Sequence record: NC_027364.1
DNA: 64,000 nucleotides
Reading direction: 5' to 3' (one strand)
Of this stretch, positions 9,314 through 9,481 are shown piece by piece (position 1 is the first letter of the stretch; each line of letters opens with the position of its first letter). The translations under genes were made by a program, and so were the position numbers. Under the pieces are notes generated by a model. The model was not told the origin of the DNA and searched no databases. It worked only from the letters and a program-made list of their open reading frames with translations.

Positions 9314-9481
9314 TTATACATGTGGGACAAACATAATGATGTGTGTTTGGACAACTCTAGTGCCATCACTTAAGATTATACCATTATCACAAACATCAAT
9401 CACAGTACCCGTTACCTTTACACCACCAGTAAGATAAAAATCATATATAACGTTAGCATCTATTGTAAAAATATCTTTCAT
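9314..9481 (-). CDS. small Hfq/Sm-like protein (55 aa)
   Basis: Hand translation [55 protein letters not shown] resembles the Hfq Sm1/Sm2 pattern; fills the intergenic gap exactly; RBS is weak. Confidence 0.55.

Follow-up and report, generated by a model that had tools for sequence, protein, structure and literature searches.

Does the short open reading frame (ORF) that follows the ribonucleotide reductase gene nrdB in a 64,000-nucleotide stretch of sequence record NC_027364.1 encode a phage counterpart of the RNA chaperone Hfq, or a protein that has kept the fold of Hfq and little else? In this text, "the window" refers to that whole stretch, at its full length. An earlier note, made from the letters alone, had singled out this ORF of 55 amino acids (aa) as an Hfq/Sm-like protein and had proposed that it acts either as an Sm-ring RNA chaperone or as a subunit that poisons the Hfq hexamers of the host. 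The ORF and its translation were matched exactly in the ORF list of the window:

9314..9481, minus strand: the 55-aa Sm-like ORF, with an ATG start; the coordinates include the stop codon (ORF list and translation).

An in-frame TAA lies two codons 5' of this ATG, so the ORF cannot be longer. The phage in question is a 121Q/PBECO4-type jumbo coliphage (Asteriusvirus), and the protein is 100% identical to gp34 of Escherichia phage 121Q (YP_009101628). Our analysis suggests that this relative of the Hfq/Sm fold is a divergent one and would have been stripped of the features with which Hfq matches RNAs, namely the helix with Q8, the arginine rim, the uridine pocket formed by F42 and Y55-K56-H57, and the basic surfaces. 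The use to which such a protein would be put is a more tentative matter, and we favour protein binding.

The evidence for the fold comes from structure prediction. AlphaFold2, run on the window protein as a single chain with a 42-sequence alignment, gave a best model with a predicted local distance difference test (pLDDT) score of 92.6 and a predicted template modelling (TM) score of 0.75, and the pLDDT of the five models spans 88.6-92.6. In the best model, DSSP assigns strands to residues 12-17, 22-31, 34-37, 42-44, and 48-53; residues 1-11 are coil, and no helix precedes strand 1. The top 50 matches of a Foldseek search against the PDB are all Hfq, with TM-scores by query of 0.71-0.80 and root-mean-square deviations (rmsd) of 0.9-2.0 Å, except for one outlier at 3.1 Å; the Hfq proteins of E. 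coli, Salmonella, and Pseudomonas superpose at an rmsd of 0.9 Å over 47 residues, with 26% identity. VIA-align, which is independent of Foldseek, placed eight Hfq chains first in a wide search (Z 9.1-7.9, 51-55 residues aligned), followed by archaeal SmAP, eukaryotic LSm/Sm, and EDC3 LSm domains at Z 7.8-6. The BFVD model of the homologue from phage CBB, which was built independently, matches ours with a TM-score of 0.87. A search of the ESM Atlas returned unnamed viral clusters and weak leads to DUF6897 and DUF2642 only, and we found no literature on these two leads. The Sm/Hfq-like fold suspected in the earlier note is thus borne out by the pLDDT of the model and by the agreement between Foldseek and VIA-align, and the prediction of a bare five-stranded, strongly bent antiparallel Sm barrel of the Hfq type is well supported and of high confidence.

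The relationship is fainter in the sequence. Pfam assigns no family to the window protein even at E <= 10, and a search of NCBIfam gave nothing. The Hfq family PF17209 touches two of the 42 family members, with a best E of 0.0089, and Hfq is absent among the 28 matches of an exhaustive profile search. Eight sub-threshold matches were returned by a sequence search of the PDB, including Hfq (E 0.65) and the Edc3 LSm domain (E 1.6). Direct comparisons are more telling: BLASTP with the Hfq core gives 14 identities in 39 positions (pairwise E 0.007), and hhalign of the phage family alignment against an Hfq alignment gives a probability of 67-75%, pairing residues 11-38 of the window protein with residues 20-47 of Hfq. 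The hhalign score of 27.5 compares with 9.8 +/- 2.3 (maximum 17.5) for a column-shuffled null, in which none of 300 shuffles reached it. These probabilities are conservative, because the Hfq profile is shallow (an effective number of sequences of about 2): the search of a big collection gave 8000 near-identical enterobacterial cores, and a genome scan for Hfq yielded mostly gamma- and betaproteobacterial sequences with 83-100% identity.

In this alignment, the Sm1 glycines G20 and G25 of the window protein fall on G29 and G34 of Hfq, and the hydrophobic pattern of strands 1 to 3 is shared. Greedy extension would also pair D3-I-F5 with D9-P-F11 of Hfq, and P53 with P64, at low alignment confidence. 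The Hfq-core alignment that had been made by eye is therefore upheld by BLASTP and hhalign in its Sm1 half, while the register of its Sm2 half is insecure, since the two programs disagree there. For this reason, the equivalence of H47 with H57, the histidine of the Hfq Y-K-H motif, cannot be retained as secure: BLASTP supports it, whereas hhalign and the strand boundaries favour I48 opposite I59 and P53 opposite P64. Whichever register is used, the H47 column is not conserved in the phage family. We consider remote homology between the Sm1 half and Hfq to be probable from these comparisons; convergence on a common beta pattern may be an alternative explanation of the likeness.

To see which functional residues of Hfq persist, the residue states of 29 diverse family members were read through the hhalign alignment. 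Residue numbers on the phage side are those of the window protein, and figures after a residue letter are numbers of members:

Helix of Hfq and its N13-R19 segment with rim residues R16, R17, and R19: deleted in the phage family, with no basic residue conserved there.
Q8 of Hfq: variable in the phage family.
F42 of Hfq: N or D (residue 33; N19/D9), followed by the invariant G34, which is the one invariant residue.
Y55-K56-H57-A58 of Hfq: P-[Q/T]-D-K in most members and V-Q-T-H in the window.
D40, Q52, S60, and T61 of Hfq: not kept in the phage family.
Y25 and K31 of Hfq (distal A-R-N site): Y16 and K22 in the window copy; the columns vary (V10/T8/Y3 and Q9/K7).

The columns that correspond to the Y-K-H region are Q16/T12 at position 45, D15/A5/S4 at position 46, and K15/H6/S5 at position 47. 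In the Hfq alignment, the residues of the proximal pocket (Q41/F42, K56, and H57) and the Y-K-H-A motif are invariant. The absence of the N-terminal helix, which had been noticed by eye, is seen both in the coil that DSSP assigns to residues 1-11 and in the deletion of N13-R19 from the alignment. The positions that the phage family does conserve lie mostly in the core (F5, Y13, L17, G20, G25, G34, I48, and F51), and its most conserved polar positions, [N/D]33-G34, [H/R]42, [Q/T]45, D46, and K47, map to loops 3 and 5. The window copy has a single cysteine, C31, in a column that reads F10/Y8/R4/C3 across the family.

The charge of the protein differs as well. The phage proteins are acidic throughout the family, with a median isoelectric point (pI) of 4.5 and a net charge of -5 (pI 4.7 for the window copy), whereas the E. 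coli Hfq core has a pI of 10.0 and a net charge of +4. Beyond the barrel, 31 of 58 members carry a C-terminal tail of 8-36 residues, net negative in 27 of them; an acidic E-T motif, for example E-N-E-T-P-E or K-D-E-T-A, recurs in these tails, some of which end in F-V-V. No such tail is present in the 121Q and RaK2 clades or in the window copy. E. coli Hfq ends in DSEETE; the likeness between the two motifs is short and of low complexity, and may be meaningless. Judging by the alignments and the model, the protein has the fold that defines the Hfq family, but membership fails on the Pfam match, the helix with its arginine rim, and the Y-K-H motif with the uridine pocket; at the distal A-R-N site the picture is mixed.

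Whether the ORF is a gene at all can be judged from its relatives. Matches by tblastn were found in 71 phage records, with identities from 100% down to 33%, so that conservation, on which the earlier note had let its proposal depend, is clear. All 71 are RaK2/121Q-like jumbo phages of ~350 kb, from Escherichia, Klebsiella, Salmonella, Erwinia, Yersinia, Serratia, Pectobacterium, and Cronobacter, with a single phage of Xanthomonas besides. Searched exhaustively with the family profile, 1.84 billion cluster representatives yielded 28 matches at E <= 0.001, of which five are spurious: these are long proteins (634-1508 aa, with several matched stretches) belonging to Big_6, InlB-B-repeat, and PPC surface proteins, unrelated and driven by composition. 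The small number of matches in so large a collection indicates that the family is small and restricted to its lineage. The scan of IMG/VR with the 55-aa protein returned 121Q itself as the sole hit, and a word-indexed protein search with the single sequence found 4 close relatives, more being reached only with a seed alignment of tblastn-derived homologues. Pairwise ratios of nonsynonymous to synonymous substitution rates (dN/dS, Nei-Gojobori) are 0.12-0.38 among pairs whose dS is unsaturated, and the sense frame is the only one of the six that is free of stops in all 11 relatives compared. According to these sequence comparisons, the ORF is a genuine gene under selective maintenance, confined to the RaK2/121Q/GAP32/CBB lineage of jumbo phages.

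The description of the gene as unannotated was true of the track available to the earlier note and not of GenBank and RefSeq, where it is 121Q gp34 and is annotated in most relatives. The public records of the relatives call it "hypothetical protein" or "membrane protein", and it is uncalled in those of RaK2, phAPEC6, G17, and slurp01. The second of these names is carried by phrog_17251 (PHROG 17251), which matches the ORF, and by many RefSeq records. The maximum Kyte-Doolittle mean over 19 residues is 1.13 for the window copy and 0.56-1.62 across the 29 members, and the predicted model is an all-beta soluble barrel. Hydropathy and predicted fold thus give the label no basis, and we consider it wrong.

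The gene is the next cistron downstream of nrdB, after a gap of 50 nucleotides (nt):

9532..10656, minus strand: nrdB, class Ia ribonucleotide reductase beta subunit, the upstream cistron (ORF; annotation of the identical 121Q region; PF00268 on homologues).
10711..13029, minus strand: nrdA, upstream of nrdB.

This position is kept in 19 of 19 loci examined, including metagenomic contigs with the most divergent members. The common order is nrdA, nrdB, the Sm-like ORF (54-85 aa), an ORF of 76-80 aa, an ORF of 125-141 aa, and a MazG-like pyrophosphohydrolase gene; the 125-141-aa ORF is missing from the order in phage EJP2 only. Many relatives have an extra ORF of 233-257 aa between nrdA and nrdB, annotated in GAP32 as an endonuclease with DUF723 and said in CBB to be similar to gp559 of Bacillus phage G. 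It is missing from the window and from the 121Q, RaK2, BF, and 7t3 types, and is probably a mobile insertion.

The signals around the gene bear on when, and how strongly, it would be expressed:

9495..9519, minus strand: GC hairpin with a T-run, terminator-like or an attenuator (stem-loop 9519..9501; pattern scan: 8 bp, 3-nt loop, then TTTCTT).
9489..9494, minus strand: Shine-Dalgarno-like ATGGGT, 8-13 nt 5' of the ATG (read from the sequence).
9280..9309, minus strand: sigma-70-like promoter of the next gene, TTGGAA-18-(TG)TATAAT (pattern scan), marking the end of the unit to which the ORF belongs.

The remark that the ORF sits just past the nrdB terminator is confirmed by this hairpin and the TTTCTT that follows it. 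A hairpin with a T-run is found after nrdB in 11 of 11 relatives, with a weak T-run in Serratia phage BF; the stem sequences vary, so that it is the structure that is kept and not the sequence. The ribosome binding site (RBS) had been called weak (GGGT). It is indeed present at 9489..9494, but a purine-rich element, (A/G)TGGA, GGAG, AAGG, or GTAGA, occurs at the same distance (8-13 nt) before the start in all 11 relatives, and the weak site is therefore better described as a conserved feature. The 19 nt that separate the hairpin from the ATG leave no room for a promoter of the ORF's own. Two candidates were rejected: the TATAAT at 9488..9483 is too near the ATG to yield a translatable transcript, and a TATAA-like string where nrdB ends follows from its Leu and stop codons. 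Just 3' of the ORF, a perfect TATAAT is present in 11 of 11 relatives, preceded by TG in most, and in CBB and Yen9-03 a TGAAAC-type -35 lies ahead of it; this combination is the "divergent RpoD-like" motif described for the DNA-metabolism promoters of CBB (PMC5259590).

A second GC hairpin with a T-rich tail stands between nrdA and nrdB (10686..10705, minus strand). Since intercistronic hairpins recur in the nrdAB operon, they cannot all be full terminators. From this arrangement, we take the ORF to close the nrdAB unit as its last cistron and to rely on read-through of the hairpin. Because expression would probably come by this route, the protein would be expected at the time of the early or middle genes for nucleotide metabolism, in smaller amounts than NrdAB. 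The public RNA runs that contain this region are wastewater or metagenome contigs (one of them probably DNA), which show a patchy presence and are silent on transcript ends, strand, and level.

Two small genes follow on the same strand:

9018..9251, minus strand: gp35 family (121Q gp35), 77 aa; annotated to 9281, which gives 87 aa (alignment of 9 homologues of 76-80 aa; GGAG at 9261..9258).
8612..9016, minus strand: gp36 family (121Q gp36), 134 aa, "virion structural protein", with a YggL-like domain.

The gp35-family gene probably starts at the ATG at 9251, in view of the length of its relatives (76-80 aa), of the GGAG at 9261..9258, and of the overlap between the -10 box and the ATG annotated at 9281. 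Its product combines an acidic N-terminal part (pI 4.4) with a conserved Lys/Arg-rich C-terminal half, whose tail has 15 K/R in 30 residues (pI 11.3). AlphaFold2 predicts helices at residues 3-21 and 27-76 (pLDDT 81), so that the basic half would form one long helix; the domain and family searches, NCBIfam included, assign it to no known family. The gp36-family alignment matches E. coli YggL by hhalign (probability 93.9%, E 1.6e-7) on an invariant R-S-x-R-x2-K-K-x-H signature, and the homologue from Salmonella phage Munch scores 25.8 bits against Pfam YggL_50S_bp, for which the cut-off is 27; these matches mark the family as a distant relative of YggL. The annotation of YggL is that of a protein that binds the 50S subunit and is a putative factor in ribosome assembly (PMC7498339). 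That a ribosome-factor-like protein is reported in virions is odd in itself. Both small neighbours of the Sm-like gene thus have a flavour of RNA or of the ribosome. Genes for MazG, DHFR, and RNase H are also nearby, several virion-protein genes are close, and a scan of the window found no tRNA gene and no Rfam family.

What might a bare, acidic Sm barrel do in this setting? The answer that we favour, tentatively and as an account that could well prove mistaken, is that this minimal and divergent Sm domain serves as a small acidic module for binding proteins, whether or not it assembles into a ring, and that its partner, engaged early or midway in infection, is basic and RNA-associated. The LSm domains of EDC3 and LSm14A offer a precedent, since they are monomeric, do not bind RNA, and hold a helix of their partner on strands 2 and 5 and in the space left free by the helix (PMC3877753). 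Like these helix-less domains, the uniformly acidic 6-kDa module would act by binding protein: the surface that the absent helix leaves exposed would, with strands 2 and 5, hold a helix or short motif of the partner, and self-assembly into an acidic ring through the free beta4 and beta5 edges would be possible. The partner might, in the first place, be a basic RNA-associated protein of the phage or host, for instance the adjacent gp35-family protein with its Lys/Arg helix; the basic faces or the rim of host Hfq come second, and ribosome-associated factors third. The last are considered because the YggL-like gene lies two positions downstream.

Several observations weigh against this proposal. 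The conserved N-terminal D-I/V-F-x-F (pLDDT 78) may fill the place of the missing helix and thereby block a peptide site of the EDC3 type. The conserved polar residues of loops 3 and 5, which are the pore-lining loops in Sm rings, may instead form a non-canonical nucleotide site. Charge alone is not decisive either, because acidic Sm proteins that bind RNA exist. Moreover, the synteny with nrdB, gp35, and gp36 may reflect descent and not function; as all these phages form one lineage, it is weak functional evidence. Finally, the protein is a predicted product of the sequence, and its partners are candidates.

Among the other explanations, the most direct is that the protein is a phage analogue of Hfq, forming a homo-hexameric or homo-heptameric Sm ring that binds RNA at the pore and serves as a chaperone or stabiliser. 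The closest structure is indeed Hfq, the family conserves the Sm1 motif with G25 and the hydrophobic pattern, and its best-kept polar residues are found in loops 3 and 5, the site of the RNA pocket in Sm rings; downstream of the gene lie those for the protein with the basic helix and the YggL-like protein, and canonical hfq is so nearly absent from phages that there is no known phage solution to compare. However, the protein is without the helix, Q8, and the arginine rim, F42 is replaced by N or D, Y-K-H is lost, and the window copy has equivalents of Y25 and K31 that vary across the family. A median pI of 4.5 and a net charge of -5 also speak against this role. The rim arginines are essential for the chaperone activity of Hfq (PMC9704730), and the window has no tRNA gene or Rfam RNA. 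The proposal of a phage Sm-ring RNA chaperone is therefore not supported by the missing helix and rim segment, the unconserved F42, Y-K-H, and Q8 positions, and the acidity of the family, and we regard it as unlikely.

A second explanation turns the charge to account: an acidic ring or module would sit on the basic distal face or the rim of host Hfq and block RNA, with the E-T-P-E tail as an aid in the relatives that have it. The charge is opposite to that of the Hfq core, the gene lies in an early or middle unit behind nrdAB, and the acidic E-T tails of 31 of the 58 members resemble the DSEETE tip of E. coli Hfq. This acidic tip of the C-terminal domain mimics nucleic acid and competes with RNA for the rim (PMC9704730), and the acidic six-fold surface of gp14 of phage T4 binds Hfq through K31, Q33, R19, T49, and S65 (PMC12929587). 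Against such a decoy, the window copy and the RaK2 clade have no tail, the motif likeness is short and of low complexity, and the target is invariant across hosts, yet hardly any surface residue of the phage family is invariant. We give this decoy the same small chance as the Hfq analogue. In its boldest form, the protein would be a phage-encoded Hfq mimic, the first of its kind, aimed at the RNA-chaperone system of the host: the acidic module or ring would bind the distal face or rim of Hfq or another basic partner, such as the neighbour with the Lys/Arg helix, the E-T-P-E tail would help in many relatives, and regulation by small RNAs would be shut off or redirected early. This, too, is an outside chance.

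The position of the gene suggests a third explanation, namely an accessory of ribonucleotide reductase or of the complex for dNTP synthesis, at the place that yfaE occupies after nrdB in E. coli. It follows nrdB immediately in 19 of 19 loci, with the MazG, DHFR, and RNase H genes near. However, its one non-conserved cysteine, set against four cluster cysteines, excludes a 2Fe-2S ferredoxin of the YfaE type, a conserved terminator-like hairpin separates it from nrdB, and the synteny is that of a single lineage. No partner of ribonucleotide reductase is known to have an Sm fold, and we consider this role improbable.

The other proposal of the earlier note, a subunit that poisons host Hfq, would require co-assembly with newly made Hfq into mixed rings that lack RNA-binding sites. 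The model has the fold and strand order of Hfq and free beta4 and beta5 edges, and a mixed ring would be defective, as the phage subunit is without the RNA-binding residues. Yet the phage protein retains neither the Hfq residues of the beta4-loop-beta5 segment (Y55-K56-H57-A58 and S60-T61) nor the helix packed against the subunit interface. Moreover, existing Hfq hexamers are abundant and stable, and a subunit made during the lytic cycle would therefore reach few of them. The Hfq core is identical across host genera, whereas the phage family has drifted below 30% identity with almost no invariant surface residue, so that the poisoning of host hexamers is not supported and seems to us very doubtful.

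Equally doubtful is a role in assembly, in which the protein would be a phage-encoded stand-in for the host Hfq that forms a "second genome gate" under the T4 neck protein gp14. T4 recruits host Hfq in this way, and Hfq is absent from finished virions (PMC12929587); RaK2-like phages share core morphogenesis genes with T4, including the neck protein gp13 (PMC5259590), and several virion-protein genes are close by. The contact in T4, however, is between the positive face of Hfq and the acidic gp14, and the phage protein is itself acidic; the gene lies after nrdB in a nucleotide-metabolism unit, with no T4-type late promoter (TATAAATA) directly 5' of it, and no gp14 homologue is listed for CBB (PMC5259590).

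Last, a chance ORF, or the membrane protein of the RefSeq and PHROG 17251 label, is scarcely credible, for although that label, the weak RBS, and the position after a terminator-like hairpin would suit an artefact, the purifying selection, the sole open frame, the 71 records, the low hydropathy, and the all-beta soluble model speak against it.

Comparison with known systems places the family among the Sm proteins without merging it into any of them. With bacterial Hfq (PF17209) it shares, according to the prediction, the five-stranded bent barrel and an alignable Sm1 segment; it differs in its size (55 aa versus 102 aa), in having neither the alpha-1 helix nor the disordered C-terminal domain, in its pI (4.5-4.7 versus 10), and in being encoded by a phage within an nrdAB operon. 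The archaeal SmAP and eukaryotic Sm/LSm proteins have the same fold (Z 7.8-6) and the same I-x4-I spacing across beta4 and beta5. Canonical Sm proteins have an N-terminal helix, an Asn in loop 3, and R-G-D/N in loop 5; in place of the last two, the phage family has [D/x]-[N/D]-G and [Q/T]-D-K. The LSm domains of EDC3 and LSm14A have an absent or shortened helix, have lost the features for RNA binding and ring formation, and are used for protein binding (PMC3877753). The structural matches of EDC3 LSm domains to the phage model have Z 6.1-6.5 (2rm4, 4a54, 2vc8, and 6y3z). These domains are eukaryotic, form part of large multidomain proteins, and are structurally further away than Hfq, and what the phage model shares with them is the barrel and the loss of the helix and of the RNA-binding residues.

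Other phages also encode small proteins with predicted Hfq/Sm-like barrels, such as gp39 of mycobacteriophage Adephagia (PMC11373665) and BFVD entries from Gordonia phages, but these ORFans have no detectable sequence relation to the RaK2/121Q family and come from other hosts and other contexts; our literature search found no characterised member among the predicted phage Hfq-like ORFans. Canonical hfq itself was found by tblastn with E. coli Hfq in 7 of 50,697 phage records, at least four of which are apparently bacterial contigs, and the literature search found no phage protein known to act on Hfq. In the T4 neck, the host Hfq ring serves as a transient, structural, and RNA-independent part of the phage (PMC12929587), but that gate uses a host protein through its basic face, whereas the RaK2/121Q protein is acidic and encoded in an early or middle operon. 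The family is thus a new, minimal, and acidic variant of the Sm/Hfq fold that belongs to no Pfam family, and is neither a new kind of system nor Hfq proper.

These results indicate that an enterobacterial phage lineage with genomes of ~350 kb keeps a 6-kDa copy of the Hfq barrel, to within a predicted ~1 Å, minus the surfaces of the RNA chaperone. A practical consequence concerns the annotation of these phages, in which the wrong "membrane protein" label is now spreading through RefSeq and PHROG. For the biology of the family, the protein allows a clean test of the capacities of a bare Sm barrel. Binding to Hfq or to some other RNA-associated partner would make it a new kind of host-takeover or accessory factor, with a use in perturbing Hfq; should its ligand prove to be RNA after all, a new pocket chemistry on the Sm scaffold would have come to light.

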